From positions 124,001-188,000 of IMG/VR virus record IMGVR_UViG_3300033153_013547: DNA of 64,000 nt. The stretch is one strand, 5' to 3'. The position numbers were made by a program, and so were the translations under genes. The first letter of the stretch is position 1. The number at the start of each line of letters is the position of its first letter. Positions 16,114 through 38,300 of this stretch are shown here, piece by piece. The notes under the pieces are model-generated. The model ran no database searches, was not told the origin of the DNA, and worked only from the letters and a program-made list of their open reading frames with translations.

Positions 16114-16526
16114 ACCTCGCTCGTTTTAATCTAGAAAATGATCAGTTAGCAATTCTAGACTGTCTAATAATTGAAGCTTGCAACATGTCCCCAGAAGAAG
16201 TTGGGCAATTGACGGGCGAGGCTTATGCAAATCATGTGGCTATGGCTGAGTTCATTCTCAATGTTCTCAGAGCAGAAAATACTCCAGTAAATACAGGAAA
16301 AGCATTGGTTCCATATAGAACTAATTTTTCCATCAATCTTGATATGTTGCTTGATCCCACGAAAGCTGCACAAGTTCAGGCAGAAAGAGCAAAACAAAAC
16401 CAGAACCAACTGGATCGCAAAGGCAAGCTAAAACAGCAGCACATGAGAATAATCCAGGAAGATCTGGGGCAAGAAGTATTCAAAGATTTTGGTATTGTGG
16501 ACAATGACGAGAATCAGACAAGCTAA
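16089..16526 (+). CDS. Tail assembly chaperone C-terminal extension (T-like part of a GT fusion)
   Basis: The -1 frame is open from 16089 (SLDLARFNLENDQLAILDCLIIEACN) into the called ORF 16185-16526; no clear RBS before 16185. Confidence 0.72.
   Translation, partial: AKTIKKSLDLARFNLENDQLAILDCLIIEACNMSPEEVGQLTGEAYANHVAMAEFILNVLRAENTPVNTGKALVPYRTNFSINLDMLLDPTKAAQVQAERAKQNQNQLDRKGKLKQQHMRIIQEDLGQEVFKDFGIVDNDENQTS
16101..16107 (+). promoter_or_regulatory. Predicted -1 programmed ribosomal frameshift site A_AAA_AAA
   Basis: Zero frame reads TTA AAA AAA GCC TAG. The -1 frame opens after TGA at 16086-16088 and runs without a stop through the slippery site into ATG 16185 and on to 16526. Confidence 0.8.
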
Positions 16527-19500: not shown

Positions 19501-22464
19501 GGTGCTGGCTTACTCAATAACATGCTTGGTTTCATAATGAAACCACAGATAGGCATGCACACTGCAGAAATGCATCAAGCCATGAGATCTGATAGCATGC
19601 TTAGCACTGGTATTGATACAACCCCAAGAACAGGTGTGGATCAAGCAAGAATAAACACATTGTTCAGTCACAGAATAGTCACATCAGGTGCTGCTGGCCC
19701 AAGACTGGGTGCCAATAGACCAATATCTACACCTGATCGTTGGGGAACACAACTGGGAGATGATAGAAATAACAAAAATTTAGAAATGCGTGGAGCAATA
19801 ACAGCAGCCAATTTAGCATCAGGTAGCCAAGGCTCACCTTCACGTTTGGGTATAGCAGACTCTACTAGCCCATTCAATGCTCATCTAATAGACTACACAA
19901 GATCACAAATGGAATTGGCAGGTATTTGGGGTTACTATGGCCAAAACCTCACTGGACTAAACAACAGAATCTATAGAATGGAAACTGGTAGAGCAGGATA
20001 TTCCATATCAGATGCCATACAAAAAGCAAATGTAGGATCATGGTTGCCTATTCCAATGTTTGGGGAAATAATAACAGAGGTGCCAAGAAGAATTGTTGGT
20101 GGTGCCCCTAAGGATTATGTAATAAATCCTTTGAGAAATACTATGCCTACGTGGCTTCCTGACAGATTCAAATATGGGAATCAATATAACCGTTTGTCAT
20201 ATGGCCAATATAGGCTTCCGTCGCCAACTTACGAAGCACTGAACAAAGTAGATAGAGAAAGGATTGGTGGATCAACTATTGGCTTACCAATCAATGAATT
20301 GGCTGAAAAAATAGCTGGATTTGACAGAACAAAGATGGGGGCAACAGCTGTAACAGGCACTTTGATGCATAAAGCAATGTTACAAGAATTATTTCAAATG
20401 GGCAAGGTAATTGCTGTTGAAAAAGCAGTAGATGATCAGCAGCACAACATGTATGGATACATAGATGCCATAGTAGAAATAGGTGGACAACCAATGGTTG
20501 TTGATCTAAAAACTACTAATGCTATGAAGTTGCAAAGAATGAGAGAAGGAGAAATTCCTGAAGTATACAAGTCTCAGATCAATTATTATATGTGGGCTGC
20601 CAATGCCTCTATGGGTGCTTTGTATGTTGTAAATCGTGATAACCCAGCAGATAAAATGTTTTGGACAATGAAATTTGACGAAGGCAGACTACTTGACGAC
20701 TTCATCAAATTAGAAAAGGCCAGGGCAATGGTTAGAAGGCTCATTGAACAAGGCTATATTTCTCCATATGAAAGCTATAGGGACTTGGATAGGGCTAAAA
20801 TTTTGGCTGATGTTGCCCCTTATTCTGACGAATTTTCAGACACATTTGAAAGACTTTTGGCTGAGCCAGAAAAAGACATAACCAGACAAGAAGAACTTAA
20901 CAAACTAAAACTGAAAGTGAATAGGATCAAGTCAGGAGATACTTTTGACGAATATTTGTGGAGAAACCCTACAAAGGTCGTTGATGTTCAGAGCATGATG
21001 GTTGAAGATGATAATACCATAACCATGACATATAATTTCAGAGGCAAGAAAAGAACTCATACAGGTGTTCTTGCTGGGGCTATGCCAATAGAAGGTTATG
21101 AAGTGGCATTCAACAAAGCTCTCAAGCAACTAATGCCCATTGAAGCACTAGAAAACGTTAGAATAATGCCTGATGATCCTAAATCAAAAATCATCGTATT
21201 TACCAAGGGAGGTAATAGTGTAGCACAACAATTAGTGGACCTTCATCTTGGTTTGCCCGCCACAACAGGCAGACAAGAAGATAGAGAGGCTTTAATGAGA
21301 CATCAGGGATCATATGCTTGGGAATGGTTCACTCACTTAGATTCTCCTATGCACACCAAATTTGGGAAAGCAGATGCCTGGGAAGAATATAAAAGAAGAG
21401 TTGTATATGGCACAAGATATACATCTCCATTCACCCGTCCTATAAAATATACAGGACACATGTTAGAAGCCCTTGCTGGACACGACAACCCTATAGAAGC
21501 AGCCTTTGGTGGAGCCATGGTTGGAGCACTTATTGGTAGCACAGCAGGTAGATTAGCAGTGGGTGGCATGGCAAAAGGAGCAATAGCAGGTAGTATTTTG
21601 GCAGTTGCAATTTCTGGTGGACGTCAACTCATTGATCTTTTCACTGGTAAGGCTATGGTTCCACCAGAAGAAAGAAAATCAAGAGAGATAGAGGATTATG
21701 TGGACAAACTTGAATATGTCAAGTTTAAAAGGCTCTTTGAATCTACTTCCTTGATGTTAGAAAGAGCAGGAATCAATCTGTCTAAAATAGCCAATATGGT
21801 TATGTCTGGTAAGACAGTAGTTGATGAAGTAATGCAACAATTCCCTAACTATGGTCCTTTGATCAAAAGAGGGCTGTATTATAAACAAGAATATGAAAGC
21901 ACTATGTTTGCATTGAGTAGAGCCAGTGATATGAGAACTATTCTTAGAGCTTTACCCAAAAGAGAAAGACAATATTATTTGGCTTTCAAAAACTATCACC
22001 AACATAATAAAAAACAAATATTGAAACTAGCATCTCCATCACTGAGAAAGGCTCTGGCTATCACGTGGGGAGAAGACATGCCAGAGGGGGAATCTATAGA
22101 CAAATACTTCCAGTCTCATTGGCTACCAGAGCCCAGTTGGACAGGATGGCAACCAGATACATCTATCAGTGATTATAAGGTAGTTTTGGCAAGAGAAGAG
22201 GGGGTTGAATACCATGAATTGGGCATGTGGGAAGACTCAGTACAAAGAACCAGGATGTGGCAAGCTCAACCACGTATGCGTCATGGAACTGGCGTCAATA
22301 TGCAAAAAAGGATTAGAGAATTGTTAGGTAGAAACGGCCTGTCTGATATAAGTATTCAGATCTTACAGTCAACATCAGACAAAGACATTGATATAAACTT
22401 CACTATTCGGGAGGATGCATCCAGAAGTGCTGCAGTAAAATATGCGGCTAGTCTGGAAATGTAG
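16543..22464 (+). CDS. Tape-measure-position protein with PD-(D/E)XK nuclease and SNase-like domains
   Basis: Directly follows the chaperone frameshift pair; mostly helical with hydrophobic G/A-rich segments. GTLMH...GYIDA...VDLKT...QINYYM nuclease motifs at about 20356-20592; SNase-like segment at about 20968-21258. Confidence 0.75.
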   Translation: MREYESDRLYGGLKNLGILASVATLGVWGYRSGHVAKAARSLIQTGFPAVRAGLQALKHTEEAYTASHIGIGDAVSQFGIHYQREFKKLQKFYATRTATGNPLDSIIGAATHLPSLLESIQSFVTAIPRADFSRIGFEEAKGDLIRDLGKINPNRVVSEEFAYSVYRMLGLESQKFTPISIGGLHVNVNQLSQLTTHHKPLDTRAVKAAFDTRKKNLKEDFSRSQFDGGLTFMKWLLGDPQARRATLFDVRQDLINRLGIRGKTGAEIDEKLAAYVDKSLDTFKLSEDAKVIFNDLFYDPKAAKEIFLDHNIFKTTEGLLDARSITTSVDDLLASLSKRWRIPLIKWNPFDMVRSQLALKQTQPYAVVVTGDKIPMLSDKDTNVIYSKIGEKLYRFKKKEAEKFSFELVEKIDWGGKKRPYKVMHLDPSAGTMGGIVAKRLGLRGYHSEALDDIVLGWAARFVKGGIEGVPDPYVFLKELEQGRLVDYGITSQSLENRLENFWKGGLLNINVVAIGKWLEKQLDNPKITAEARQSIAEYVDSLVYKHPKQDNTLHLARMIDKAMAKDTAFMRMFKETGGVVKELLNLSPEQQEARILEIGMKNALNISKRSVVEAGGQRTILERMEMDFGVWSVLEHFRLLNSPATSMNAFITGGHITESMAQEMASLKILDTYLYSIMRMAPARNKLHWMTHEGHQLAAFEAFSKTPDWARILRTHYEPLDSIRIQDALIKKNVTATEIYENLARINKAADISEVAGILYDTTVDVGEMFLSAFGFRAQDYGSSTLMPHYFAVTLSEQMELLTGMMGIRPSNSLWAKSPFSLGLAWAGIEVAFGTAINSFNAADLAMRGAGFRGPRQFAMDAWANANLLLGLASGKLKETQDYYAEGEEEIRASRWWSLGSTPWEGGRIKFTVPNLYRRVGVRDVYYEQKWGGELQALAHSSYPSILTPFAPIRHFLTDRYYYERLHLKDEPVPLTGELFEPSAPGAGLLNNMLGFIMKPQIGMHTAEMHQAMRSDSMLSTGIDTTPRTGVDQARINTLFSHRIVTSGAAGPRLGANRPISTPDRWGTQLGDDRNNKNLEMRGAITAANLASGSQGSPSRLGIADSTSPFNAHLIDYTRSQMELAGIWGYYGQNLTGLNNRIYRMETGRAGYSISDAIQKANVGSWLPIPMFGEIITEVPRRIVGGAPKDYVINPLRNTMPTWLPDRFKYGNQYNRLSYGQYRLPSPTYEALNKVDRERIGGSTIGLPINELAEKIAGFDRTKMGATAVTGTLMHKAMLQELFQMGKVIAVEKAVDDQQHNMYGYIDAIVEIGGQPMVVDLKTTNAMKLQRMREGEIPEVYKSQINYYMWAANASMGALYVVNRDNPADKMFWTMKFDEGRLLDDFIKLEKARAMVRRLIEQGYISPYESYRDLDRAKILADVAPYSDEFSDTFERLLAEPEKDITRQEELNKLKLKVNRIKSGDTFDEYLWRNPTKVVDVQSMMVEDDNTITMTYNFRGKKRTHTGVLAGAMPIEGYEVAFNKALKQLMPIEALENVRIMPDDPKSKIIVFTKGGNSVAQQLVDLHLGLPATTGRQEDREALMRHQGSYAWEWFTHLDSPMHTKFGKADAWEEYKRRVVYGTRYTSPFTRPIKYTGHMLEALAGHDNPIEAAFGGAMVGALIGSTAGRLAVGGMAKGAIAGSILAVAISGGRQLIDLFTGKAMVPPEERKSREIEDYVDKLEYVKFKRLFESTSLMLERAGINLSKIANMVMSGKTVVDEVMQQFPNYGPLIKRGLYYKQEYESTMFALSRASDMRTILRALPKRERQYYLAFKNYHQHNKKQILKLASPSLRKALAITWGEDMPEGESIDKYFQSHWLPEPSWTGWQPDTSISDYKVVLAREEGVEYHELGMWEDSVQRTRMWQAQPRMRHGTGVNMQKRIRELLGRNGLSDISIQILQSTSDKDIDINFTIREDASRSAAVKYAASLEM

Positions 22465-22469
22465 CAATC

Positions 22470-25400
22470 ATGGCAATATACATTCCAACTTCTTCTACTG
22501 TATATGCAAGCGAAGACCTATTGCGGTTACCTGCCATGCTTGGAACAGAAGATGTTTTTGCCAAGTATCTTAGCAATATAACTGACAGAAAACATACTAT
22601 TACACTTTTTGTGATAGAAAGTGACAATCTACCACAAAAAAGGCTGGAAATTGTTTTGGAAGGAACAAAGATACGGGTTTATACAGAAACAACCACTACA
22701 CCAATCATTTTTTCCAATACAACGTTTACCAAAATGGAACCGTTTATTCGTAATGGCAAATTCGAAACCGCAGGACGTAACGTGGAAGTTAGAATACTGG
22801 CTCGTGATCTAGCCATTCTCATAGAAGAAACCAAATACCAGTCTGGTTCAGCATTCATACCTGATTCAATAGTGCAAATGGTCACAGCAGTTCAAAGAAG
22901 GACAGATCCAGAAGGAACGATAATCAACCTTATCACCGCTCTCGAAGAAAAAATGGCTCAAGTGCCCATAGGAAGAATAGGAGCCCAATTACCACGAACA
23001 CCAGGATTACAAGCGGGAGAGCATTTTATTACAGTTCTTGACGATCTAAAAAAGAGAGATGTGCTAAACGAAGGAATTAGAGAACTATCAGAAGCACGAA
23101 TCAGTGGAATAGCCAGAGGACAAACACCCGATATGGCTCAAAAAAAAACTCAAGCAGTCACTGCCATAGTTACCAAAGATTATCTGGATAGATTTTTTAG
23201 ACAAATAGTAGGTGGTGGCAAAAAAACTGTTACAGAAGAATTCGAAGAATTTGTCAAAACCAATAGGGTTGCCCAAATAATTGAAGATCTTGTAGATTGG
23301 CATGGCTGGATCACTGCCTTCTATGGTTATACAGGGCCTACTCAAGAGATTATAGAAACAGCCTTTGAAGAAGCTGCAAAGGAATACATTGGCATTGTAG
23401 GCCTACTATCTCCCGAGGAAAGAAGTAATATAAAGACCAGATTCATTGCCAAAGTAATGGATGGGATCAAAGAAAGAAAACAAGCAAATTTGCCATATGA
23501 AGTTAGTGTGCGTCTTAAGAAACTCAAATCCAGTGGGGCAGTAATAGATGTTGGCAAATTTGCCTTGTCAGCCCCAGATCAAATGACCAAATCCTTGGGA
23601 GCCAGAAATCTTAGTGATGCTTTTGGAACAACAAGAGTTCCTTCTGGGCTCAAAGAACACGTTAATCAGATTCTTGCTGCCCCACTACAGATCAGTAAGC
23701 CACTATACAGACAATACACACCTTACCAAGATCTAATATCCCTGATTGATCAACTAAAATCCATTCCTAAGTCTGGTGTTATTCCTAGAATATTAGACTT
23801 TGAGGGGTGGATTGGAGACAACATTACCCTCACAACCCAACTGGGTGTTCTGGATGTTGCTGATTGTGCCAAGAACTTCACAGAGATTACCAAAGCAGGC
23901 TCTCAGTTTATGATGTCCAGCAGACCTCATGGCATTCATGGTAAAGTAGATGAGCAAACAGCTACTTATTTGAAAGATGAGTTGCTCAAAATGTGGAGCA
24001 AAGCCAAGGCATGGTCACTTGATCCTAGAGAATCTCATTTCAACCCCAACGACAAAAACAGCAAACTGCTCATGAATCTTGGTAGAATGATTATTGCTGG
24101 TTCAGAAGATATGGAAACACAAGAACTCAGAGCTGCTACCATGGCCCAACTAAATGTTGAGGGCATTAGTGCAGACACATTATTAGACTGGTATGAAAAA
24201 GCACTTCATCAAAAAATGAGACACCACAAGTTTGAAGGCAAAGGAACAAAAGCAACACTCTCTGAATTTCAAGAGCTCATCAAAACCACATTCAAAGATG
24301 GTAGGGTTTTCATGCACAACCCAGAGGGTGCTGATATTACCCACATATACAATCTTTTAGAAAAAGGATCAGATCCTATAGCCTATGCAGAAGCCAAAAA
24401 ATTAGTGCAAAGCAAAACCACAGATAGTATTGCTATATTTCAGTATTTACAAGAATTGGCCATGGTTAGGGGGGACAAGTCTTGGGAAGATATGGCTTCA
24501 ACGTCTTTTGCCATGAACAATTTAGTCAAGAAGTATGAAAGCCTTATGGGGGGATTGACCACTGCAGATCTCCACCTGCTTGGTAAAAACGATGCTTATG
24601 CTGCAGGTCGACTCATGATTATCAGTCTGAATGCAGCAATGAACGACACCACCGCACATAGTATGGCTGATCAAGTATTTGCCAAAAGCGTTACATCTGA
24701 AACAATAACCAATAACTTACGATTTGTAGCAGAACTTTTTGATGAAAATCTTGCAAAAAACAAAAAACTCTTTACAAACATAGAAGATTGGATCAGAGTG
24801 GCCAGTGGTATTGATCCCTCAGAAGATTTGGGCTCTAAATTAGTTCATGAAGGAATTGAGGTTTATAGTATAGTAACCAAGCCTCTAAAAAGATCAGATC
24901 TTGAGCTATGGGCACAAAGATTCGATGTGACTATGGAGACCCCTGTCGGACTGGAACGACTGGAAATAAAACCACCACGAGGGCTACGTTTAGGACAAGT
25001 AGTTACTGATGATCCATCTGTATGGAGGGCGGGCACGGCGCTCAAAACACTTCTCCAAATGGACGCAAAAACCAATGAAATTCTATTTAGCTTCACAGAT
25101 ATGAATGGCATCCAGCATAAATTTAGGGCCAAAAACATATTAGCTCTAAACAACTTACTGGCTCAAGGAGGCTTTGAAACCACAACAGAAAAAGGAATGT
25201 CTAGATGGATCAACACACTCATGGACGATGCTCGAAGACTATTCGACAATCTCACTGGTTCTTTCAATGAAGATCCAAACATGATAGGACGAATAATTGA
25301 AATACATAGCAACAACATAAGAAACATTATAGATCATTCAACAAGAGACCCACAAATTGCGGGTATACTTGATAAAACATCAGAATTACTTGCTGCAATA

Positions 25401-26756
25401 AAATCTGGTGAACCACTATTTGACACAACCAATCCTCTAGGACATACTTTTATGCAGAACATGTTTGATCTACACAAGCTTGACTGGTTGGAGGGAGGCA
25501 GCAAGTCCATTGCAGAAGCAGTAATATTTGTGGCACAACACAAAAACAATCTTGAAGTTGTTGACACTATGCTAGGAAACCAGATGCTTTTACATCATCT
25601 AACCAAGAGCATGTATACTGGTGATGCTAGAAGTTTTCTAATGTATGATCAAGAATTAGCCGATAGATTAGGAAAATCAATGGAGGAAATTAGTTTTTAC
25701 AAATATAGCCCCCTGGCTGAAGGCACAGTGCTTGACAATGCTGTTTTGAGAATTGGGGACACAGATTCCTCGGTCATAGTATCAATGAATGCTCATAAAA
25801 CCCACGACGACATCAGGGCAATTTTGAGCAGAACCACAGACAAACATTCCAAGGCAGCAAGATTCTTGGCAGATGAATTTTTGGGTGAAACAATAGATCA
25901 AAAAACCTATGCACTGTCTAATAAAACAGAAAGAAAAGTGTTAGGAGACAGAATAGCAGCACAAATAATCAAGGAATCACAAGAGATCAATACCTTCAGA
26001 AGAACACATTCTGAATTGTTATACGAACCAACTATCGCTCCTGGCGTAGCCACGGGCAAAGGAAGAAGCGCCTGCGGAAGGGCTATTTTTGATGTTATCC
26101 ACGATGAAGAATTCATAGGCAGAATAGTGGGGAAAGGCCACACACTGTGGGAAGAACTCAAAATAGCTTCAGACACAGGTAGATTTAGAAACTTCCCAGA
26201 TGCCTTGATGCAATACGGTAATTCTATTATAGACACTATATCCGTGGCAGCAGAAGAAAGTGGACGTCTTAGAGACAAGACTTCAGCAGCCAACATAATT
26301 ATGGCATTCAATAATATGGGCATATTTGAACCTGCAAGTGTCGAGAATCGTTTCTTTCCACAAATGCCAAAAATACAGGCTGATATAAGTAAAACTGTTG
26401 TAAAGAACCTGGGTCGCATGGGAATGGCAGCAGCAGCAATTCCTCTAATTGCATTAGGTGCTGCTAGGCCCCCACTTAGAGGACTAGAAGAATTACCAGT
26501 AGATGAAGCATTTGATCCAGATTTTCTGCAAGGCAAAACATCAGCTGCTGGACCACCAATTGTTATTCAGAAACCACTTGGAATTACAATAAATATTGAT
26601 GCCAAGGGCACAGAAGGCAGATATGATTTGTCTAATATAATGAATAGCTTGAGACACACCATGGGAATAAACGCCGAACAGCGCGTGACAACGTCGTTTA
26701 ACAAGCTCTCTGATATTGAAATTGAGAGGCTCATGGAAATGGAGGCCATAGATTAA
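22470..26756 (+). CDS. Large protein with DEDDh (DnaQ-like) 3'-5' exonuclease motifs, probably virion-associated
   Basis: ExoI ILDFEG (23790-23807), HGI, ExoII FMHNPEGAD (24309-24335), DSIAIFQYL, ExoIII LHLLGKNDA (24570-24596), in the expected order with insertions. Confidence 0.65.
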   Translation: MAIYIPTSSTVYASEDLLRLPAMLGTEDVFAKYLSNITDRKHTITLFVIESDNLPQKRLEIVLEGTKIRVYTETTTTPIIFSNTTFTKMEPFIRNGKFETAGRNVEVRILARDLAILIEETKYQSGSAFIPDSIVQMVTAVQRRTDPEGTIINLITALEEKMAQVPIGRIGAQLPRTPGLQAGEHFITVLDDLKKRDVLNEGIRELSEARISGIARGQTPDMAQKKTQAVTAIVTKDYLDRFFRQIVGGGKKTVTEEFEEFVKTNRVAQIIEDLVDWHGWITAFYGYTGPTQEIIETAFEEAAKEYIGIVGLLSPEERSNIKTRFIAKVMDGIKERKQANLPYEVSVRLKKLKSSGAVIDVGKFALSAPDQMTKSLGARNLSDAFGTTRVPSGLKEHVNQILAAPLQISKPLYRQYTPYQDLISLIDQLKSIPKSGVIPRILDFEGWIGDNITLTTQLGVLDVADCAKNFTEITKAGSQFMMSSRPHGIHGKVDEQTATYLKDELLKMWSKAKAWSLDPRESHFNPNDKNSKLLMNLGRMIIAGSEDMETQELRAATMAQLNVEGISADTLLDWYEKALHQKMRHHKFEGKGTKATLSEFQELIKTTFKDGRVFMHNPEGADITHIYNLLEKGSDPIAYAEAKKLVQSKTTDSIAIFQYLQELAMVRGDKSWEDMASTSFAMNNLVKKYESLMGGLTTADLHLLGKNDAYAAGRLMIISLNAAMNDTTAHSMADQVFAKSVTSETITNNLRFVAELFDENLAKNKKLFTNIEDWIRVASGIDPSEDLGSKLVHEGIEVYSIVTKPLKRSDLELWAQRFDVTMETPVGLERLEIKPPRGLRLGQVVTDDPSVWRAGTALKTLLQMDAKTNEILFSFTDMNGIQHKFRAKNILALNNLLAQGGFETTTEKGMSRWINTLMDDARRLFDNLTGSFNEDPNMIGRIIEIHSNNIRNIIDHSTRDPQIAGILDKTSELLAAIKSGEPLFDTTNPLGHTFMQNMFDLHKLDWLEGGSKSIAEAVIFVAQHKNNLEVVDTMLGNQMLLHHLTKSMYTGDARSFLMYDQELADRLGKSMEEISFYKYSPLAEGTVLDNAVLRIGDTDSSVIVSMNAHKTHDDIRAILSRTTDKHSKAARFLADEFLGETIDQKTYALSNKTERKVLGDRIAAQIIKESQEINTFRRTHSELLYEPTIAPGVATGKGRSACGRAIFDVIHDEEFIGRIVGKGHTLWEELKIASDTGRFRNFPDALMQYGNSIIDTISVAAEESGRLRDKTSAANIIMAFNNMGIFEPASVENRFFPQMPKIQADISKTVVKNLGRMGMAAAAIPLIALGAARPPLRGLEELPVDEAFDPDFLQGKTSAAGPPIVIQKPLGITINIDAKGTEGRYDLSNIMNSLRHTMGINAEQRVTTSFNKLSDIEIERLMEMEAID

Positions 26757-29700
26757 TGACACAGACACCTTCACACATCAGTATTGAAAATCTACACAGG
26801 CAAGTAGTAGATAAAGTCATTGCACTGGATATGCATAGCATTTTACACACACTTGAAGAATCAGGAGCCATTGGGGGTGGCCTTACTCAAGAAGAACAGC
26901 TCAATACCATTCTCAATGCTGTAAAAAAGACGTCTTGGGGACAAGGCATCTCTCTTGAAAAACTATCCACATCACAAACTTCAGCATTGACGGGGCCATA
27001 TGACAGAAACAGGGTGGTTGCAGCTATTACTGCATCTGCTGAAGCATCTTCTATAATGAAGATAGTATTTAATCTCCAAAATTACAAGAGCAAAATCACA
27101 GGCAAGGAATTGTTTGATCAAGATATGATAGGGCCAAGGCTGTTGTTTTTATTAGAAAAACCACCTTCTGATGTGGAATCTATTGCCAAAACCTTTTCTA
27201 CATCTGACCAGCTGTCTAATAGAAACACTATTGCTGCAATGTTAAATACCTTCAACTACCTGGCAGCAATAGACAAAGTACATAGTGACTGGGATAAAAG
27301 GTTGGCAGAAGGGGAAACCCCCCAACAATTACAACGAACTGTCAATGATTTAGTAAATAAGATAAAAACCGACGTTAATCGAGCCAACGAATATAATCTT
27401 GATGCACAACATCTTGCAACGAGAATGCGTAAAAAAGATACATTACAGCAATCTCTGAAAGTAGTAAGTGATCCAAAACTCATCCGGCTTGAATCAGACA
27501 TTAGACAGGGCATTAAAGCAAAGCTTTCTGGAGACACCACTGGCAATGCTGTTTTGCTAATAGCTGATGTTGATGCTAAGGGCAATCAAGTAGGAATGTA
27601 TAAATCCATGAGGGAATTTTTGACCTCTTATGGATTCAATCAGCCAGAAATTATTGCAGAAGCTCTGGATATACAAATACAGCATCCACAAAACTTTGAT
27701 CAAGCAACAAAAGCACTGAAGGCTACAGATAAACTTCCTGAATTTCTTTTCAAGTTGAAAAAGGGCGACAGAGAAAGGGTGTTTAGGGGCAGGCTTGGTC
27801 CTGCTCCAGTTAGACACCCCCAAATAGACATAACGAAAGGTTTTCCCTACAATCTTGTCTTGGCTGCCCATCCTGATAGCACAATACCTGGTGGTAAAGC
27901 AGCCCAGCGAGCCACAAGTGGGATAGGAGTTAATCAGGTATACGTGAGTCTTCTAAACTTAGCCAGAATAAACGCAGACTATGATGGGGATACAATCATA
28001 AATTACATAAATACCAATCTAAAATCTGAGATACTTCAATACATAAAAGAACATGGTAAAAAAGAGAGCCCTGGGCTAGTATTAGTTGGGGCCATGGATA
28101 TGATAATTAAATCCCTGGCATTCGGTGAGGAAACCAAGAAAGAACTGATAAGTGCTGGAATGCTACGCTCCAAGCTGAGAGAACGAGTAGGCGTAATGGC
28201 TCGCCAAAGAGCAAACTTTGTATCCAAAAGAATCCTCAAAAAGTCTTATATCCCAGGACAAACAATGGTATTAGAGATTGGGGGCATCAAATATGGATTG
28301 GAAGCTAATCCTGCTCAGGGAATAAAAGAAATAGAAGTCCTCATAACTGAAACAATTATGAAGAATTTTGACAAAAACATGAATCCTGCAAAAGCATTTG
28401 TCAGAGCAGAAGAATTGATACATCAAGAGGGGGATATTTATGTTTTTGATCATCTTGCCAACAAAAAACTTTCTGGAATAGAAGTTGTAAAGTGGCAAGA
28501 GAAAAATATAAACCGTGCTCTCATTGAAGACAATCTACTGAAATGGGGATTGCACCTAAGTGATCGTGTAAAGAGACTGGGCGCAGACAATGCTCTCATA
28601 AAACAATTCATGGCAAAATTGGCAGACACAAAAGATCCAGACAATTTCTTAAGATCTATGGAAGCCATAAATGACATAGCACAAGATATTATCAGCAGAG
28701 GAGATGTTTCTGAAGAAACAGTCAGCAAAATTATAAAAGAACATGCCAGAAAAACGGGCATTGCTTTTGAAGCACACAAAATACTTAAAGGGGGAGTAGG
28801 GGAAATTGGAGTGATACAGTATGCGTTCTTTGAACACGTACACAATAACATCAAATATTTGTCCAATATTGGTGCAGAACAATTAACAGATCTCAAAAAA
28901 TTAGCTGATTTCTTTGAGGTAATGGCACAAATTCCGTTAGAAGCAAAGCACAAAACAGGTGGTTCTTTCAAAATGATAGCCCACATCCTTCGCACGGTTC
29001 TCAAGGGTGGAGGTGTCAATGTTAAGGACACGGCTCAAGACATAACAAACATTCTAATGCGTGGAAAGATGCCAGAAGTACTCGCAAGTGTCACGGCTAC
29101 TGCTTATCCGGTTGGCCAAATTTGGGAAGGCGAGGGTTTTACTCTACATCGTACAAACCTAAGAAACTGGGTAGAAGAAGCTATTCGTGTTTTGGCAAAT
29201 CCGCGTATATCCACAGCAATACAAGAACAAATTAGCAACAAATCAGCATGGACAGGGGGAGCGGGAGCAGCGGCAAGGGTTGCGGGCGGCATGGAAAGCA
29301 CTATTATTGAACTTACTGGAACCAAAGATATTACCCAAGCATTTGAGGGAGCACTAAGCATCAACCCAAAAGACCCAGGCGCCGTTGATGTTGTCAAAGA
29401 ACTTCACCAACTTAGTACTTCTAGTTTTAAAAGACGTGACTACGACAGTTTTACTCGCAAGCCCAACGAATTAGCAACCATCATTTCTGAAAAAGCAAAA
29501 AAGAATGTTTATGAAATTGCTCGTGTTACAGACAAAAGTGGCATATCTAAATTAGAACTAAGACAAATCTATGATCCTAACAAACCAGAAACCTTCGACG
29601 CCATAGCCTCGCGGCTACCTGCTGGAGTAGTTCCAGACGAAGACACAATACAATTTGTTATAAATGATAGGGTGCGAAAGCAAATACAAAATGGAAGAGC

Positions 29701-32332
29701 CGATTATCTCATGCCTGAATTTATGGAAACAGAGCTGAGAAAAAGAGGCGTAATGATAGAGGCAATGCAACGATTAGAAGGTGAAATGCTATCTCTATCT
29801 AAGGTCAGCACAATAGCAGATGAAGAAAAAGCAGCACTATCCAAGAATTTATATGCCTTTGCAATGGAATGGCATGAAAAAGTTCATGGTGGGAAAAGAG
29901 GGGCAGAGCATTCGTTTATCGAAGCATTTGGTGATTATCTAAAGAACACTGGTATTACTGCGTTAGACTTAGAAGAAAGTGGTCATATAGAACAATATGG
30001 GAAAAAAGTCATGTCTGCTATGGCAGATCTTAAAATAATATTTAGCAGCCCAACCAGTGGTCAAATAGCAAATCTACTGGGTGGTTCAATTGCATCAATA
30101 CCTGCAATAACAAATGCTGAAGAATTACAACAACTCGTAGCAACAAGAGTATTTGATCCTATGGCCAGAGTATTTGCAAAAGGCCAGTCAACAGAACTGG
30201 GAATCAACTTTATCAACGAAGGTGCCGTGCAAAATCTTGTCAACAAAGTCAGAACCATGGAAAGCCAGGGCATCAATCAGAGTGAGCTACAAAAAATATT
30301 TGCAAAAATTACTGGCTTAAATGAAGAACTAATCACAGATCCCCTTATGCAAGACATTGCAGACAAATTTCAAAAACTTCTCAATCAGTCTGAGGGTGCA
30401 ATGTGGATCCTAAATTGGCAACAAGTAGCTACAGTGCAAGAAATGAAGATCAGTGAAGAAAGTGCAAAAATCTTTAGTAAAGCTCTGCAAGGAATCTATG
30501 CTTCTGGTGAAGAAGCACTTGATGTTGTGCCAGGCACAAAACAATATGAAAGATTCTTGCAGCAATATGCTGCAGCTGAAGGAAAACACTCTCCTCAGTA
30601 TCTCAGAGATCATGGTATTCCTTTTACTGACGCCACAGGCAAACCACGCACTATTCGGCCAGAACATATGGGGCTAAACTTCCGCCCACTTATTCATGGC
30701 GATAAATATGCCATGGTGCAATGGAAAGGCTTTCAAGCAAGTCAAATCCCCTTTGCCAAGGCCCACCTATCTGGCCTTGCGTTTCCAGTAGGAAGCCTTA
30801 TGGAAGAAGTTATAGAAGAAGCGGGTAAAAAACCGGAAAACGTATACAATCGGCTTGCAGCTTTCATGATGAGTGGTGATCTAAATGCTATTGATTCATG
30901 GCTTGGGGAAGCAGAAAAAACAAATATTTTGATACCACGAAATCCCTTCAACAAATGGGCACGTGCTTTTTTAGGAGCAGCTCCTGGGTGGAACGCACAT
31001 AACGAGCGAGCAACTGCAACGGGTGTGGGACCCACCGTTGTGATAAATCTCGTAGAGGACTTGGGTCTTAGAGATGTTTTTGTTACATTGAGAGAGGGGC
31101 AATCTCCAGAATTTTCAGATATGATGACAAACATAATTGCTGAAGAAGCACCTGGTGGAAGCATAGGATTATATCGTATGGTAGAAGAATTGTCACGAAT
31201 ACGTACCAAACCACTGGTTGCACTTGAAAAACAGGGAATAATCAACCTACGTTATCTGGATCAAAACATGCTGCGTGATCCTCTGTTAGAACGAGCAACA
31301 ATGGGAGATCAAGTTAGACTGAGAAACACCATAAGACTAACAGAGCTTGGCATAGACAACACTACTAAAATTGATGAAATATTGCTCAAAAAGATCAGGG
31401 CAACTTTCCCAGCAGATGATAGCATAATTGTTGGACATAATGATTTAATCACCCAAATCCTAGCAGCAGACAAAAAACGAAATATTCTAGGCACAAAATT
31501 TGGGGCCATTGGCTACACAAAGGGAATTTATGACTATCTACAAGTAGCCATGGAAATGTTAGATGACATAATGGCTCCTGAAGATATTCCCATTGGACAG
31601 AGAAACCAGTGGGTTATAGAAAATATCCTTGCTGGATTTATCAACCCATCAGATTTACCCATAGATGAAGCAAGAGTTATAGATGCAGGCAAAAATATTT
31701 ACAAAAGGAATTTATACAATCTTGGTCAATCTTCTGAATGGATCAATAGATATGCAACAGATTATTCTGATACATTTAGAAAATCTATAGGAGCCAATGT
31801 TCATGATTTTATAACACAGGTAGGAGAAAGAAACCCAAAGATCATGGGGACACTTGGCCTCATAGCATTGGGAGTGGGAGCTTTTTCTGTGGCAAATATG
31901 CTGGATTATACCAGTCTAAAGGCTAATGAAGACAATCTTCATCAGTATTCAACTAATAAAAGATTAGCAGATTCCATGGCACATGCCAAGACATATGATC
32001 CGCGAATCATTGTTATAGATGGCATAGCCGCAAACGAAACTACTGAAGCAATAACTGGACTATCTAGTCCTCATTCAAGGGCCATGCAAAAGTTTGGCCC
32101 TATTGTGAATCGTCCCCCAAGTGGTGGCAGTAATGGACTTTTTAGAAGAGAAGGTATGGGGTATAACATACCCATATCAGAAGCCAGATCAGCAAGATCT
32201 CTACAAGAAATAAGCAGTGTTATATCTAATAGAAAGTTCAATGTAAATACTAATATAAAAGTTGTTCAAAGGGCTAATGCCGACAGTATAAAGACATATT
32301 ATAATAACTATGTAGAATATGGCAGTTTCTAA
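26756..32332 (+). CDS. Single-chain two-barrel RNA polymerase-like protein (putative virion RNA polymerase)
   Basis: NADYDGD at 27971-27991 with upstream RHPQI and RQGIKAK...GNQVGMYKSMREF; bridge-helix-like HARKTGIAFEAHKILKGG (28742-28795); trigger-loop-like QIPLEAKHKTGG (28928-28963); beta-like GDKYAMVQWKG (30698-30730), EAGKKPENVYNRL and GPTVVINL. Confidence 0.82.
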   Translation: MTQTPSHISIENLHRQVVDKVIALDMHSILHTLEESGAIGGGLTQEEQLNTILNAVKKTSWGQGISLEKLSTSQTSALTGPYDRNRVVAAITASAEASSIMKIVFNLQNYKSKITGKELFDQDMIGPRLLFLLEKPPSDVESIAKTFSTSDQLSNRNTIAAMLNTFNYLAAIDKVHSDWDKRLAEGETPQQLQRTVNDLVNKIKTDVNRANEYNLDAQHLATRMRKKDTLQQSLKVVSDPKLIRLESDIRQGIKAKLSGDTTGNAVLLIADVDAKGNQVGMYKSMREFLTSYGFNQPEIIAEALDIQIQHPQNFDQATKALKATDKLPEFLFKLKKGDRERVFRGRLGPAPVRHPQIDITKGFPYNLVLAAHPDSTIPGGKAAQRATSGIGVNQVYVSLLNLARINADYDGDTIINYINTNLKSEILQYIKEHGKKESPGLVLVGAMDMIIKSLAFGEETKKELISAGMLRSKLRERVGVMARQRANFVSKRILKKSYIPGQTMVLEIGGIKYGLEANPAQGIKEIEVLITETIMKNFDKNMNPAKAFVRAEELIHQEGDIYVFDHLANKKLSGIEVVKWQEKNINRALIEDNLLKWGLHLSDRVKRLGADNALIKQFMAKLADTKDPDNFLRSMEAINDIAQDIISRGDVSEETVSKIIKEHARKTGIAFEAHKILKGGVGEIGVIQYAFFEHVHNNIKYLSNIGAEQLTDLKKLADFFEVMAQIPLEAKHKTGGSFKMIAHILRTVLKGGGVNVKDTAQDITNILMRGKMPEVLASVTATAYPVGQIWEGEGFTLHRTNLRNWVEEAIRVLANPRISTAIQEQISNKSAWTGGAGAAARVAGGMESTIIELTGTKDITQAFEGALSINPKDPGAVDVVKELHQLSTSSFKRRDYDSFTRKPNELATIISEKAKKNVYEIARVTDKSGISKLELRQIYDPNKPETFDAIASRLPAGVVPDEDTIQFVINDRVRKQIQNGRADYLMPEFMETELRKRGVMIEAMQRLEGEMLSLSKVSTIADEEKAALSKNLYAFAMEWHEKVHGGKRGAEHSFIEAFGDYLKNTGITALDLEESGHIEQYGKKVMSAMADLKIIFSSPTSGQIANLLGGSIASIPAITNAEELQQLVATRVFDPMARVFAKGQSTELGINFINEGAVQNLVNKVRTMESQGINQSELQKIFAKITGLNEELITDPLMQDIADKFQKLLNQSEGAMWILNWQQVATVQEMKISEESAKIFSKALQGIYASGEEALDVVPGTKQYERFLQQYAAAEGKHSPQYLRDHGIPFTDATGKPRTIRPEHMGLNFRPLIHGDKYAMVQWKGFQASQIPFAKAHLSGLAFPVGSLMEEVIEEAGKKPENVYNRLAAFMMSGDLNAIDSWLGEAEKTNILIPRNPFNKWARAFLGAAPGWNAHNERATATGVGPTVVINLVEDLGLRDVFVTLREGQSPEFSDMMTNIIAEEAPGGSIGLYRMVEELSRIRTKPLVALEKQGIINLRYLDQNMLRDPLLERATMGDQVRLRNTIRLTELGIDNTTKIDEILLKKIRATFPADDSIIVGHNDLITQILAADKKRNILGTKFGAIGYTKGIYDYLQVAMEMLDDIMAPEDIPIGQRNQWVIENILAGFINPSDLPIDEARVIDAGKNIYKRNLYNLGQSSEWINRYATDYSDTFRKSIGANVHDFITQVGERNPKIMGTLGLIALGVGAFSVANMLDYTSLKANEDNLHQYSTNKRLADSMAHAKTYDPRIIVIDGIAANETTEAITGLSSPHSRAMQKFGPIVNRPPSGGSNGLFRREGMGYNIPISEARSARSLQEISSVISNRKFNVNTNIKVVQRANADSIKTYYNNYVEYGSF

Positions 32333-35300
32333 CAATTACACAGAGACCGTAAATCTTGGTGGCGTGACGTTCAATGTCCCCATAACTAACATCAAAACAT
32401 CTGTCCAGAGTAACATAACGTCTTCCAATTCAATTAGAGAATCTGGATCTGCTAAATTACAAACAGATCAGATTGTAGAATTGCTGGAAATAACGTTTTA
32501 TGCCTTTGATCAAAATGGGCTGAAAACTGCTGCAAGCCTCATGCAACTCTATAAAAATATACCCTTTGTATGGGTTGCTTCTCCATATATCAATGCTGGG
32601 CTCAATATATGTGATGTAGCACTGCATAGTGTTACTATTTCTAGTGTTCCTGGGTTCCCCAATACATATAAAATAGACTTGGTTCTTGCCCCCTTTGACT
32701 CGTTTGCTATAACCAACTGGCCCACCCTATTATCTGGCACAAATCTTGAGCTGTATTATACATATCAAACATATGTAGCAAACAAGACTGCAAAAAGACT
32801 TGGCTCAACCAAACAATATGGTGTTATGTTACCTACTGATCCTCCTGGGCAACCAAATCCCTTTGACATTTTTGTGCCATCTGATGACTTTTTGGAAGAG
32901 ACCAAAATGGCCATGGACATGATTGATAATGCCCTAAAGAATGCTATTACATTTTCCAATAAAAACGAAGATGGATTGTATGCAGTAATCACACGCGACA
33001 TAGGAACAGACAATACTCCAGAAGAAATGTCTAAGAAACTGGCTGATCAACTCAAAGGATATTTATTAAATGCTGTGGCCAAAGATGCAGACGGCAATGA
33101 AATTAGTTTATTTACCAAAAACAAAAATGGAGACATTGTGCCAGCCCCATGGGACAAATGGCAACAGTGCAGAATATTTGATGTTTATGATCCTGACACA
33201 GGCAAAATACTTACTGGTGCATCTGCAGAAAGCAAGTTCCTAAATCTTTTTGAAGCCATAGAAGAAGCCATTGGGCAAAACTCTCTTGAAGAATACATAA
33301 GAAGAATAGATGCAAATCAATCTTTAGCAACCTTTCTCAATTCTTTTGCCAGTATTGCCAAAAATACAGATCTATACACACATGCAGCTACAGCACTCCA
33401 AATCAACGCAGTAGATATAAATTTAATTAGGCAAGTAATAACAGGAGAAAATCTTCAACTCAAAGTCAAGTTGCCTAATTATTCCTACGGACAGGAGGGT
33501 GCAGCAATAAACAGGGGATATTGGGATTATCTTCTGATGGGTGTAAATATAGATGTAAATATTGGAGGAAATTTCAAAGCCCAAGCTCCTACAACAACCA
33601 ATCAAACAGTCCCAGATCACTTAGATTTATTTGTTGAAGACATTGACTCACTAAAAAGACCAGGTTTCCTTGGTTTACTTTATGACATATATCTAGGAGC
33701 CAGAGGCTTTCAAAATATATTGTCTGGAGCCACAGAATCACTTGCAAAATTGTTTGATAGAGACAGATATAGAGAAAGTGGATATATTCCAGCAGGACTA
33801 ACCCAATTTTCCCCACAGCAGGTTGTTGTTTCATTCAACAACAAATTTTCTACTGGATATTTGCAAAATGCTCTGACTGTAAGACCCATATATTCCTATG
33901 TTGGATCAGGAGACTTCACAATACAAATACTAAATACTGTTACAGATCCTGACCATAGTGAACTGAAAAAATTTACAGATACAATAGATTTGGCTTTCTT
34001 ACAAAACAAAAAGTTCCAGGGAGAATTGCCTGCAGGATTTATTGCTATTAGAGACCCATTGGTTCAGTCAATGGGTATTTTTGAGTGTCTGATAATTGGT
34101 TATTCTGTTACTCCTATGCCAGAATATCCCAATGTTTTTCATGTAGAACTTACTACAACTGATTTCAATTTACAGAAACGCACAGAATACATGATCAACC
34201 GCATTGATCCTTATGGAAAAATACATGGTGGCGATGACAAAAGCACTGCTGCCGCAACAGCACTATCTTCTTCATTGCTTGATCCTGTTTTTGATCCTGC
34301 GTCACAATTTTCATCGCAAGAACCGAGAACACTTGAGACGGCGTTTGGAGAGCAACAAATACAATACGATCCAGAATATAAGCCACCCACAACCAGCAAT
34401 AGTGCCTCTGGTAGCGAAGCCTACTATGATTATGAAAACATAGATGGTGGAGATATATTATGCGTCAAAGAATTATATCAAGACTGGTTCAGAGCCAAGT
34501 ATTCACTCAGACAGTATAATTGTTACCCAGATATTATTTTACCAACACTACACGAGGCACAAATTATATTTGGTGATTTTGACAAGCCCATATCCATTGC
34601 TACTGGTGCAACCAATATTGACAACCCCTCCACTGCTGAAAACAAAACAGAAGTTCATGTGCTAAAAGACTTCAAAGCATACTATGAATGGCGTCAGGCA
34701 GGGCTGATCAACGGAGAAAGAACAGATCCATTCATGGACTATGGGGGAGATATCAATGTTACTAAATTAGATTGGACTGAAACTGGTGAATATGTAGTGC
34801 CCTATTTTTTCTTCTATCCATCAAGGATTGAAGTAATCAGTGATGCAAATGCAAATGTCAATCAATATGACACTCCACTTATAGGAGGAGATGATCAACT
34901 AAACCGAGGAGATAATCAACTAAACCTCAGTAGTTTCAATATAGACGGAGATATCAACGGAACAACAGAACAACCAGATGGCTCCTCTGCCATTACCGAA
35001 AAAGAAAAAATATACGAATCTCCATTTGGTGCCGCTGCGCGGGTGTTTGGGCTGGCGCCTGTGGCGCCGCCCCCTACAGCACCAGCTGGATCCATAACTG
35101 ATGTTACAGAAGACATTGCAGAAAATTCGGAGTCAGGCACGCCTGCAACAACAAAAGAAAAAAGCACGATGCAGGAGAAGATGGTTGGAAAGAAACGTAT
35201 CAAGAAAATTAAGGAAATACAAAAACACCAGGCAGAACACCCCACTACAGATGATGAAGTCGGCACGGAAGACACAGCATTTACAATGCCTCTTGGTGAA

Positions 35301-38300
35301 TTCCCATTAGAATTCTACTGGATAGAAGAAGAAAGATATAACAAAAGAGGGGACATAGCTCAACTATTTCCAACCTTTCATATTATGATCATAGATGAAT
35401 TTCCCTGGCAATTTGGTTGGAAAATGAAAGATTTTCTTTATCAATCAGTCAGGGTTGAAAGAATAAAAACATATGGGGCATCTGATGATCTAAAAGAGTT
35501 TGCATTTGTTGATGTGGCAAATACTTATGGAGACCTTACCAAGGAAGAGATGAACCCAAGTCTTCTGGTAAGCTATGCCTTTGCACTCAAGAAACCACCA
35601 AGTCTTGAGGAAAGACTTTTTGATGATTACAGAAATTTCTTTAGCAATCTTGCAAATATGCTGGATCGAACAGATGATATAGAAACATACTTTGCAGTCA
35701 AGTCTGCTATTTCTAATGTTTCTGGTGCTCTGTTTTTGAAACAGGGTGTGCGTGTTCAGATTAGAATGGGTTATGAATCTAACCCCCTGAGACTAAAACT
35801 AGAGTTTATGGGCAAAATTCAAACTTTAGGAACAGGTGAATCTTTTCAAATTGTGTGTGTTTCTGATGGGGTAGAATTTGATACGCCCATCAATAACAGA
35901 ATAGATACCAAGGGGACAATGTGGAATAATATTACCACATTCTTTGACAAGCCTGCTGATGTCTATGGGGTTATAAACAATTTTATGAATGAACGTGGAG
36001 GAGCAGGAATCTTTGGCAACCTTGGTGATTCAGTCAAAACCTGGTTGGGCAAAGCTGGTGATTGGGGATTTGATAGATTGGTATACGAATCTCCTTATGG
36101 GATAGAACACTTTGGATACAGAAACAAGGCTGTTCCAGGCAGGTTTACCAGAACTGATTGGGATTTTAAGTCAACCAAGGAAGTTCTGAAAAAGCTCAGC
36201 TCAGATTCTACTGAAAATTCTGATCTCAAAGATATTTTCTCTAATTTGATGGCCTACAAAGACGAAGGCCAGATACAAAAAAACATAGAAGCATACGAAG
36301 AAGCACTAGAAGCAGCAGCCAAAGCAATCGAAGAAAAGGCAAAAGAGCTTAAGGCAGGAAAGGCTTGTCTATTTAGTCCCACTGAATGTCTTAAAATGCC
36401 TAAATCCTTACAGATTCCAACTGACCCCGATAATGGCACAATGACACTAAATTGGAACATTCTGCAAAGCAACACGAAGATCAAAGCCAATATACTCAAA
36501 GGTAATTTTATAGACCATTGGTCAGATCTCAGACTACGCTCACAAGGATTAGAAGAGCCCCTTAGCACCATCATCAAAATGATGAATGATATTGCTGGAA
36601 TTGATGAATTTATATCAATATTTGATCCTTTTACACCATTTTTTCCACGATATCAATTGTTTGGTGGAGACAAATATTATCAGCTATTTGGGACAATTAG
36701 TGGGCTACAAAAAGACTTGAAAGATAAAGATTTTAATCCAGAAGAAGGGTTAGAAACAGCCAAAGCACTAGATGAATTAGTCTATTTTATTCTCAATGAA
36801 TTGAGAAAACTATATGGGACTTACTCAAATTATTTCAGACCGACAAACATAGCAGAATTTGACATAGACATAGACAATATTTTGGGAGATGCCAGTATAC
36901 TACTCAAAGAACTAGAAATAACAAGAGGATCAGTCACAGCAATAGGGAATAAATCTGATAGTTCTCTAGATCTATTATTTAGATCAATGAGACTAAATAC
37001 TGGGCTTGCTCAATCTCATGGTAGAGCAAGCACACAAGCATCTCTTACGAAAAATGATATAATAACCAAAATCCTTGTCAATAAAGTTGGACTAAATAAA
37101 GAAACAATAACTCTTTATTCTAGGGGCAACAAAACACTTCTAAGCCTTCCCAACGAAGAAGCGATGATCTTGGGAGAATGGTTGCTAACCATAATCAATG
37201 CTGGTAGATCTGAAGAAGAGCAACAAACCATAGATCCATTGATCCGAGCCCTAGACGTGGCACAAGATACTCCATTAGATGTCTTTGGCATAGATATTGG
37301 TCACATTCTTTTTGCTGGTGAAACTATGATGAACATCCATCAGCCTGCCCATGCATTTAGTAAGGCAGGCAGTGAGATAAATCAGTTTGGAGGAACAGGA
37401 GCAGGAGACTTTGGCAGTGGCACAACCTATGATGAAGAAGGACTATCAACCAAAAACGACCACAGAGACGTAGGAAACACACAATTAATAACAAGTGATG
37501 GTGACAAGTTCAAATTTAGTTCCAAATTTATTAGATGGATAAAACTAACAGAAAACGGGGGGCTTCATGAATCTGTTATCAAAGGAGGAACAATAAAACC
37601 ATATGATGATGGACCACAATGGTCTATTGGATACGGAAATTTTGCTGGGGAAAAGCAACGGGACATAATAGATCTCACGCTTCACCCCCCAATCTACAAA
37701 TCGATCCCAGAATCTCTTGCAGATCAATTGCTTGTTGATGAACTAAATAAGTTTAGAAAGCAAGTTTTACGAATACTTGGAGATAGTGCTAATTTGCTGA
37801 ACCAATCACAAATTGAGGCACTAACAAGCATGACCTACAACACTGGCGCAGGCAATACAAAAACTAAAAGAGTTTATGCTGCCATCAAAGAAGGCAATTT
37901 ATCAGATGTGCCCAGACTAATTAGAGAGGGAGAAAATCGCATAAGAGGCAAAGGAGTCGATCCAGGCCTTACCAGACGCAGAAAAGATGAATCAATTATA
38001 TGGTCATGGCAAGACGCTACTATATCATCTAAAAATATAATCAATCCATTGAGCAATCCGTTTACCGAACCATCTCCCTCTTCACAATGGGACCCTGAAA
38101 CGGTATTCAATCCCTTTCCATATGAGAAAGATCTTCCTACACCCAATACTCGCATTCCAGTTAAATCATTTCTCGACGAAATAAAGCCTGCCTTCGAGGA
38201 CAGTGTGAACGCGGCACTTGGGCGACCACCCGGGAAAGAAATCCGAATCACATCGACAACAGGTGGCACCCACGCCGAGAACAGCATGCATTATAGGAGA

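Follow-up and report, generated by a model that had tools for sequence, protein, structure and literature searches.

Does a giant orphan protein encoded in the tail module of an uncultured jumbo phage carry an RNA polymerase? The question is raised by a 64,000-nucleotide stretch of DNA (the window), spanning positions 124,001–188,000 of the IMG/VR record IMGVR_UViG_3300033153_013547 (261,124 bp), whose source phage is known solely from a metagenome (JGI sample 3300033153). At issue is one open reading frame (ORF) of 1858 codons, the product of which we call wC. The original prediction had read the region 26756–29000 as the catalytic half of a two-barrel RNA polymerase packaged in the virion, on the basis of the string NADYDGD and of further resemblances to the bacterial beta' subunit. 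That range spans just residues 1–748 of wC, which is an intact ORF whose start overlaps the stop of the upstream gene, wB. We find that the observation behind the proposal is confirmed and that its interpretation is partly supported. The single most likely reading of the sequence is that wC is a tail-delivered, highly diverged single-chain two-barrel RNA polymerase, to which we would give an even chance of being right; that the protein carries a genuine relic of the catalytic barrel (barrel A) of some kind is somewhat more probable than this.

NADYDGD is present at residues 406–412 of wC, and the other strings on which the prediction was built are likewise found where they had been reported: RHPQI at residues 353–357, IRQGIKAKLSGDTTGNAVLL at 249–268, NQVGMYKSMREF at 277–288, HARKTGIAFEAHKILKGG at 663–680 and AQIPLEAKHKTGG at 724–736. 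In an alignment (A2) that joins the beta' barrel from E. coli to twelve divergent beta'-like proteins from phages, residues D408, D410 and D412 of wC fall on the invariant D/D/G/D columns, and the wC motif has the same NAD[FY]DGD form as beta' and the phage proteins. The shorter pattern DxDGD is not remarkable, having a chance expectation of 0.12 per window in the DNA (11 of 100 shuffles) and of 0.43 in the window proteins; a second example, HDSDGDE, occurs on the same contig in a giant of 1835 residues and 14 cysteines encoded at 190.3–195.8 kb, downstream of the fibre genes. The DNA pattern for NADxDGD appeared in none of 100 shuffles. At the amino-acid frequencies of the window, the expected number of NAD[FY]DGD occurrences is 1.4e-5 for wC and 1.5e-4 for the 28 window proteins together, the latter being an expectation for this one window and not scaled to the number of windows scanned. 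Chance is a very unlikely source of the full seven-residue motif in this window.

Beyond the motif, the likeness to beta' is confined to the residues just ahead of it. When the beta' barrel alignment was compared with residues 1–1000 of wC using hhalign, 27 columns matched wC 393–419 (E 1.7e-4, probability 49%) with a score of 38.7; no other window protein exceeded 20.5, and none of 112 decoys, reversed or shuffled, exceeded 21.8. The bulk of this score stems from the heptamer itself: NADYDGD implanted in 300 random natural contexts scored 32.1 on average and 9 of the 300 implants reached 38.7, so that the flanks add only p ~0.03 beyond the motif, a gain that a position matrix traced to the 13 residues preceding NADYDGD (p=0.02 against random contexts). 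The upstream blocks that had been matched to beta' do not behave as such. Scored with the beta' position matrix at the best sites in range (residues 245–268 and 272–293), the stretch taken for the first barrel strand (249–268) gives p 0.67 and the second (277–288) p 0.45 against random windows, RHPQI is not a preferred site for the beta' RAPTL block (p 0.84), and Asn264 of wC occupies the position of the invariant Arg in the SGR motif of the beta' K-x-G-x-x-R...S-G-R strands. Of the beta'-like catalytic module as proposed, then, the triad and its 13-residue lead-in stand and the upstream blocks are at chance.

The context upstream of the triad resembles that of the single-chain gp99/YonO polymerases. 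gp99 is the non-structural single-chain polymerase of the 0305phi8-36-like phages (PMC2147016), and 0305phi8-36-like Bacillus jumbo phages are the nearest cultured relatives of the source phage. We aligned gp99 with 29 of 47 collected homologues (alignment A1, a profile of 1201 columns). The top hhalign match of this profile in residues 1–1000 of wC places family columns 502–545 on wC 328–368; it is weak (E 0.1) and sets R353 and P355 of wC on R529 and P531, which are invariant in the gp99 family. In two-barrel polymerases the invariant R-x-P of barrel A lies some 35–45 residues before the triad (PMC2919709), a distance that is 44 residues in the gp99 family and 55 in wC. On this alignment, the best match in wC falls exactly where homology would predict it. 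When the triad is left out, the 100-residue segment ahead of it in wC scores 19.8 on the 72 family columns that precede GGADTDGD, a value reached by 0 of 400 random 100-residue segments of the same proteome (10.4 +/- 2.1, maximum 18.5). It is a fragile signal: a more diverse profile of YonO proteins, drawn from IMG/VR loci, does not return it as a top match, although its extended alignment puts the R-x-P of wC at the identical place.

What wC appears to have in common with gp99 and YonO is an R-x-P ... ADxDGD catalytic barrel, a candidate one in wC, and the roughly 40 residues before R-x-P, which align with 36% identity over 39 columns; in addition, gp99-like genes occur in the phage lineage closest to this contig. 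There are also differences. wC has no match to the family model PF05183 and no similarity beyond the aligned stretch (family described in PMC2147016 and PMC2919709), gp99 is a non-structural early gene product of 1218 residues whereas wC is a tail-module giant, and the barrel with the invariant residues R293/K298/G299 is not found in wC by the family profile. hmmsearch with sub-models of the gp99 family did not pick wC, and the family profile downstream of the triad gave nothing significant in it. None of the 47 recovered gp99 homologues comes from this contig, and the genes at contig 104.9–215.7 kb of 261 kb include neither a member of an RNA polymerase Pfam family nor a polymerase-like large ORF.

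The closest published case is gp96 of the Thermus phage P23-45, rather than the enzymes of N4, phiKZ/AR9 or crAss-like phages with which wC had been compared. gp96 is a tape measure of 5,002 residues in which residues 327–1124 form an active clamp-less two-barrel RNA polymerase (PMC10770324); its DFDGD triad lies at 779–783, and the protein is a virion component that transcribes the pre-early genes (PMC10770324; PDB 8H2M, 8H2N). It was found by a DxDxD search of virion proteins, published in 2024, because the remainder of the sequence has no similarity to known polymerases (PMC10770324). This precedent weakens the novelty that had been claimed for a polymerase in a tail locus, and the concept is no longer categorically new. 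Like gp96, wC is a giant protein in tape-measure position, with D[FY]DGD in its N-terminal part and [FV]R-x-P 39–55 residues upstream, and the order LK-x-G-[DE], [FV]R-x-P, VNQ-x-Y, D[FY]DGDT[LI][VI] is qualitatively common to the two. Outside these elements neither chain is recognisable as a polymerase, both have hydrophobic segments further on, of membrane-span-like character in wC, and in each case the motif is the sole direct sequence clue. A profile of gp96 and its four database relatives picks FKLKKGD...FR of wC just ahead of its own FRNP, at a level that is not significant.

wC differs from gp96 in having no sequence homology to it detectable by phmmer (E up to 10) or profiles, in length (1858 residues against 5002) and in having no metallopeptidase domain; indeed no peptidase or other Pfam domain was found in wC. 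The second barrel of gp96 (QVR...GLKG) has no clear wC counterpart. P23-45 is a siphophage, whereas the phage of wC is a contractile-tailed jumbo phage whose slot also holds the orphan giant wB, and gp96 is active and in virions whereas wC is a candidate for both. The virion polymerases of the crAss-like phages (phi14:2 gp66), phiKZ/AR9 and N4 are packaged and delivered with the DNA for early genes, as proposed for wC; they are stored in the head and not encoded in a tape-measure slot, and the N4 enzyme is T7-like rather than two-barrel. No match of wC to any of these polymerases emerged from PHROG, PDB and phage-record searches. phi14:2 gp66 resembles wC in lying in a block of giant proteins and in having been recognised by its Asp motif (bioRxiv 10.1101/2020.03.07.982082), and the phiKZ and AR9 enzymes differ in being multisubunit (PMC7598289).

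Since the upstream context of wC is like that of the gp99/YonO enzymes, in which both barrels lie in one chain, 'catalytic half' is probably the wrong frame for this protein, and no second barrel was identified in it. The marks of the second double-psi beta-barrel (DPBB-B) are an invariant pair of Lys and an Asp (K979, K987 and D837 in Rpb2). We considered three candidate sites in wC (residues 249–272, 1082–1150 and 1315–1325), none of which is backed by profiles. Residues 249–288 are the best site for the DPBB-B profile of the gp99 family (p ~0.12), with the invariant Lys unmatched, and the corresponding gp96-family profile finds nothing there. GDKYAMVQWKG, at residues 1315–1325, has the form GDKx7KG of beta/Rpb2, for which the chance expectation is 1.4e-3 in wC and 0.015 in the whole window; as a second-barrel signature it is unsupported by the beta position matrix and by hhalign with an alignment of the beta second barrel (A3), and it is probably a coincidence. 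A Pro lies eight residues past its second Lys, as in E. coli beta. The best beta-profile match anywhere in the window, at wC 1143–1203 (score 24.1, at most 18.3 in decoys), was rejected as a second barrel because it rests mainly on variable helical columns.

The bridge helix and trigger loop are assumed to lie downstream of barrel A in single-chain enzymes, as they do in beta'. Single-chain enzymes, gp96 among them, run from barrel B through a connector to barrel A and conserve the bridge helix and trigger loop (PMC10770324), which makes the downstream placement of the bridge-helix-like and trigger-loop-like strings in the original prediction topologically possible.

A number of results weigh against a polymerase in wC. 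No Pfam or PHROG family matched the protein, with sub-fragments scanned up to E 10; neither the RNA_pol_Rpb1_2 model of beta'/Rpb1 (E up to 10) nor the YonO/gp99-like PF05183 model picked it, so that its similarity to the latter is the local one of 39 columns only. phmmer at E up to 10 found no RNA polymerase match in a PDB set that contains P23-45 gp96 (8H2M, 8H2N), phi14:2 gp66, QDE-1 and cellular polymerases. tblastn against 50,697 phage records (INPHARED) returned nothing, and there was only the self-match in a word-indexed search of 5.8 billion proteins (residues 200–800) and in a phmmer search of 1.84 billion cluster representatives (residues 1–1200), and self or nothing for wC in IMG/VR scans with wC, wB and wD. 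wC thus has no detectable homologue in any collection searched, and conservation of the triad has no relatives to be compared in. AlphaFold2 run without an alignment gave unusable models (pLDDT 38.4 for residues 201–860 and 34.3 for 221–450). The second barrel with its two invariant Lys is not found by beta, gp99-family or gp96-family profiles, the gp96-family profile does no better on wC than on decoys in the upstream, downstream and second-barrel regions, and the more diverse YonO profile does not reproduce the upstream signal as its top match. The giants at the syntenic positions in 0305phi8-36 and Moorella phage MTATph1 lack DxDGD, and N-x-D-x-D-G is also compatible with generic calcium-binding loops. 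Finally, about ten profile and flank tests were made in total, so the best p-values need correction, after which the flanking evidence taken together is suggestive, not conclusive. Two sets of weak matches from these searches were set aside: PDB matches of wC residues 243–305 (window positions 27482–27670) to pertussis toxin S1 chains, at chance level (E 0.05–1.4), unsupported by any Pfam domain of that type and judged to be noise, and PDB matches to formyltransferase, Fab light chain and transketolase at chance level (E 0.3–1.2).

These results bear most directly on the strongest of the alternatives, that wC has a purely structural role, as a tape-measure-like or ejection protein, and that its NADYDGD is a chance string or a divalent-cation-binding loop, an explanation we take seriously while holding it to be clearly less than an even bet. 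It would account for family, profile and structure searches that were all negative for RNA polymerases, for an hhalign score due mostly to the heptamer, with the other beta' matches at chance and no second barrel found, and for the recurrence of DxDGD in another giant of the contig. The low-confidence models, moreover, are mainly helical past about residue 430, as in a tape measure, and over very many scanned windows a chance heptamer would eventually appear. Set against this are the small expectation of the full heptamer in wC given above, the agreement of two independent flank signals (p ~0.02 and <0.0025) and the right R-x-P distance. According to their authors, gp96 (PMC10770324) and the crAss-like virion polymerase (bioRxiv 10.1101/2020.03.07.982082) were equally undetectable by sequence.

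Where wC stands in the genome suggests how a polymerase might be delivered. Together wB and wC fill the slot of 0305phi8-36 gp146, annotated 'hypothetical tape measure protein', between homologues of gp145 (wA) and gp147 (wD). By BLASTP, wA is homologous also to MTATph1 CDS26, and wD to MTATph1 CDS32 as well as to gp147, whose annotation reads baseplate hub or endolysin. gp145 is a virion protein of 0305phi8-36 and gp146, per its record, is one by mass spectrometry; similarity of wB or wC to gp146 was not detectable. The gene had been described as lying between tape measure and hub. It does lie directly upstream of the hub/lysin homologue, and within the gp146 slot. Because this is the slot of a virion protein upstream of the hub, it is reasonable to infer packaging and ejection.

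The composition of wC is consistent with such a route. The protein contains no cysteine, where the cysteine content of the remaining window proteins would predict 13.5 (P=1.3e-6), and hence no zinc cluster, which bears out the reported lack of a beta'-type Cys zinc-binding cluster. The same bias marks the proteins of the gp145 and gp146 slots, with no cysteine in wA, wC, gp145, gp146, MTATph1 CDS26 or MTATph1 CDS27 and two in wB, and 10–15 in the hub/lysin giants that adjoin those slots. Giants almost free of cysteine in three distant phages would fit passage through the tail tube or function outside the cytoplasm. MTATph1 CDS27, in the slot equivalent to that of wB and wC, matches an exonuclease of the RNase_T-like (DEDD) type right at the Pfam threshold (E 5.4e-5; 24.2 bits, cutoff 24), a sign that enzyme domains may be swapped in this slot from one relative to another, and wA carries a PD-(D/E)XK/Cas4-like nuclease domain, for which Pfam PDDEXK_1 is slightly below threshold. 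The gp145/gp146 slot therefore looks like a hypervariable carrier of nucleic-acid enzymes in tail-travelling proteins, and as an occupant of it wC would be an ejected virion protein. One membrane-span-like segment each is also present in wA (residues 1672–1690) and wD (residues 2511–2529), as in wC; the hydrophobic segments of the three proteins lie 130–300 residues from the C-terminus, and that of wB is weaker (LGRMGMAAAAIPLIALGAA).

A hypervariable slot could also hold a polymerase module that is real but decayed, for example an inactive gp99-type fragment fused into the cargo and retained for structure or nucleic-acid binding only. The sole significant flank similarity is indeed to the gp99 subfamily of 0305phi8-36-like phages and not to YonO relatives generally, and the second-barrel lysines were not found; a perfect seven-residue signature, on the other hand, is unlikely to persist without selection in an otherwise unrecognisable protein, and we consider such a relic improbable. 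Least probable of all is a split multisubunit enzyme of the phiKZ/AR9 kind, with wC residues 230–760 as its beta'-like half and the beta-like half separate, for instance in wB: the canonical NADFDGD type of the motif, the overlap of the wB stop with the wC start (rpoB-rpoC order) and the location of the window-best beta-profile match in wC and not in another protein would suit it, but wB has no beta signature in profile and pattern scans, no beta- or beta'-like Pfam family occurs in 110 kb of the contig, and the region upstream of the triad is at chance for beta' blocks and like the single-chain enzymes in context.

If wC is a tail-delivered single-chain polymerase, its parts might work together as follows. 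The protein would belong to the virion, inside the tail of a jumbo myophage, as a tape-measure-slot or ejection protein, and its N-terminal third would hold a two-barrel RNA polymerase module of the single-chain type that has diverged extremely far. The putative catalytic barrel would span about residues 328–420, with R353-x-P355 and the Mg-binding residues D408/D410/D412. At infection the cysteine-free chain would exit via the tail tube, by analogy with P23-45 gp96, and become anchored in the membrane by the hydrophobic segment near its C-terminus; transcription of the first-entering genes would fall to the N-terminal module. Of this picture, the motif, its beta'/YonO-like surroundings, the slot of the gene and the composition are observed, and the fold, the activity, the presence in virions and the ejection are predicted.

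An active wC would be the second known RNA polymerase delivered via a phage tail, share no sequence similarity with its Thermus counterpart, and be the first such case from a contractile-tailed jumbo phage. It would suggest that tape-measure and ejection proteins are a general route of enzyme injection and that very small clamp-less two-barrel polymerases have evolved repeatedly, and it would give a rationale for the cysteine-free giants conserved in the 0305phi8-36 lineage. A broader proposal, that this jumbo contractile-tailed lineage uses its hypervariable cysteine-free slot to deliver nucleic-acid enzymes, in this phage as a train of the Cas4-like nuclease wA, an independently evolved clamp-less single-chain polymerase in wC and the lysin/hub wD, is tentative and on balance rather unlikely; were it true, polymerase delivery through the tail tube would be recurrent and not a curiosity of a Thermus phage. 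If wC is inactive, it is a warning that a perfect seven-residue catalytic signature can occur in an orphan structural protein.

Features of wC and of the surrounding tail module (positions are those of the window; residue numbers are those of the protein named)
Feature	Position	Strand	Residues	Basis or remarks
wC	26756–32332	+		Intact ORF, 1858 aa; orphan
NADYDGD	27971–27991	+	wC 406–412	Candidate Mg-binding triad D408/D410/D412 of catalytic barrel DPBB-A
NQVYVSLLNLARI-NADYDGD-TIINYIN	27932–28012	+	wC 393–419	Block aligning to beta' barrel at triad; hhalign, A2
PEFLFKLKKGD...VRHPQID..., R353-x-P355	27737–27859	+	wC 328–368	Candidate first DPBB-A strands; hhalign, A1
IRQGIKAKLSGDTTGNAVLL...NQVGMYKSMREF	27500–27619	+	wC 249–288	Originally predicted beta' strands; alternatively second-barrel remnant
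Bridge-helix-like and trigger-loop-like strings	28742–28963	+	wC 663–736	Strings as originally quoted
GDKYAMVQWKG	30698–30730	+	wC 1315–1325	Form of beta/Rpb2 GDKx7KG; regular-expression scan
Single membrane-span-like hydrophobic segment	31841–31903	+	wC 1696–1716	Kyte-Doolittle scan; ~150 aa from C-terminus
wA	16543–22464	+		1973 aa, 0 Cys; gp145 homologue (BLASTP E 2e-52)
PD-(D/E)XK/Cas4-like nuclease domain	20335–20751	+	wA 1265–1403	phrog_1706, E 7.8e-13
wB	22470–26756	+		1428 aa, 2 Cys, orphan; holds tape-measure slot jointly with wC
wD	32319–40244	+		2641 aa hub/lysin; lysozyme domain at aa 1758–1891
Major capsid protein	1997–3172	+
Tail sheath	9513–12209	+
Tube	12238–13101	+
Tube paralogue	13170–14414	+
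Baseplate_J protein	42622–43407	+		PKD-bearing fibre proteins come next

Judged by its genes, the window is the tail/structural module of a jumbo myophage distantly related to Bacillus phage 0305phi8-36. Its large genes all lie on the + strand and together make up a myophage structural module, in which the sheath gene is followed by those for the tube and its paralogue, by the chaperone-sized ORFs and then by wA, wB, wC and wD. The chaperone-sized ORFs are two overlapping reading frames (15541–16113 and 16089–16523) that directly precede wA; the position just ahead of the tail giants is the usual site of tail assembly chaperones made by programmed frameshifting. Elsewhere on the contig, at about 206.0–210.7 kb and on the opposite strand, an ORF of 1559 residues (17 cysteines) has no Pfam family and no polymerase-like signal, and it sits among small genes beside a GmrSD/HNH protein, a patatin and a CHAP/PG-binding lysin. 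Genes with inteins occur upstream of the head module, namely a 965-residue protein with Intein_splicing and a ribonucleotide reductase with intein and LAGLIDADG homing endonuclease domains. The 449-residue protein encoded just before the capsid gene (616–1965) has an identical sequence on a second contig of 5–10 kb, so that the phage or a close variant of it was sampled at least twice.

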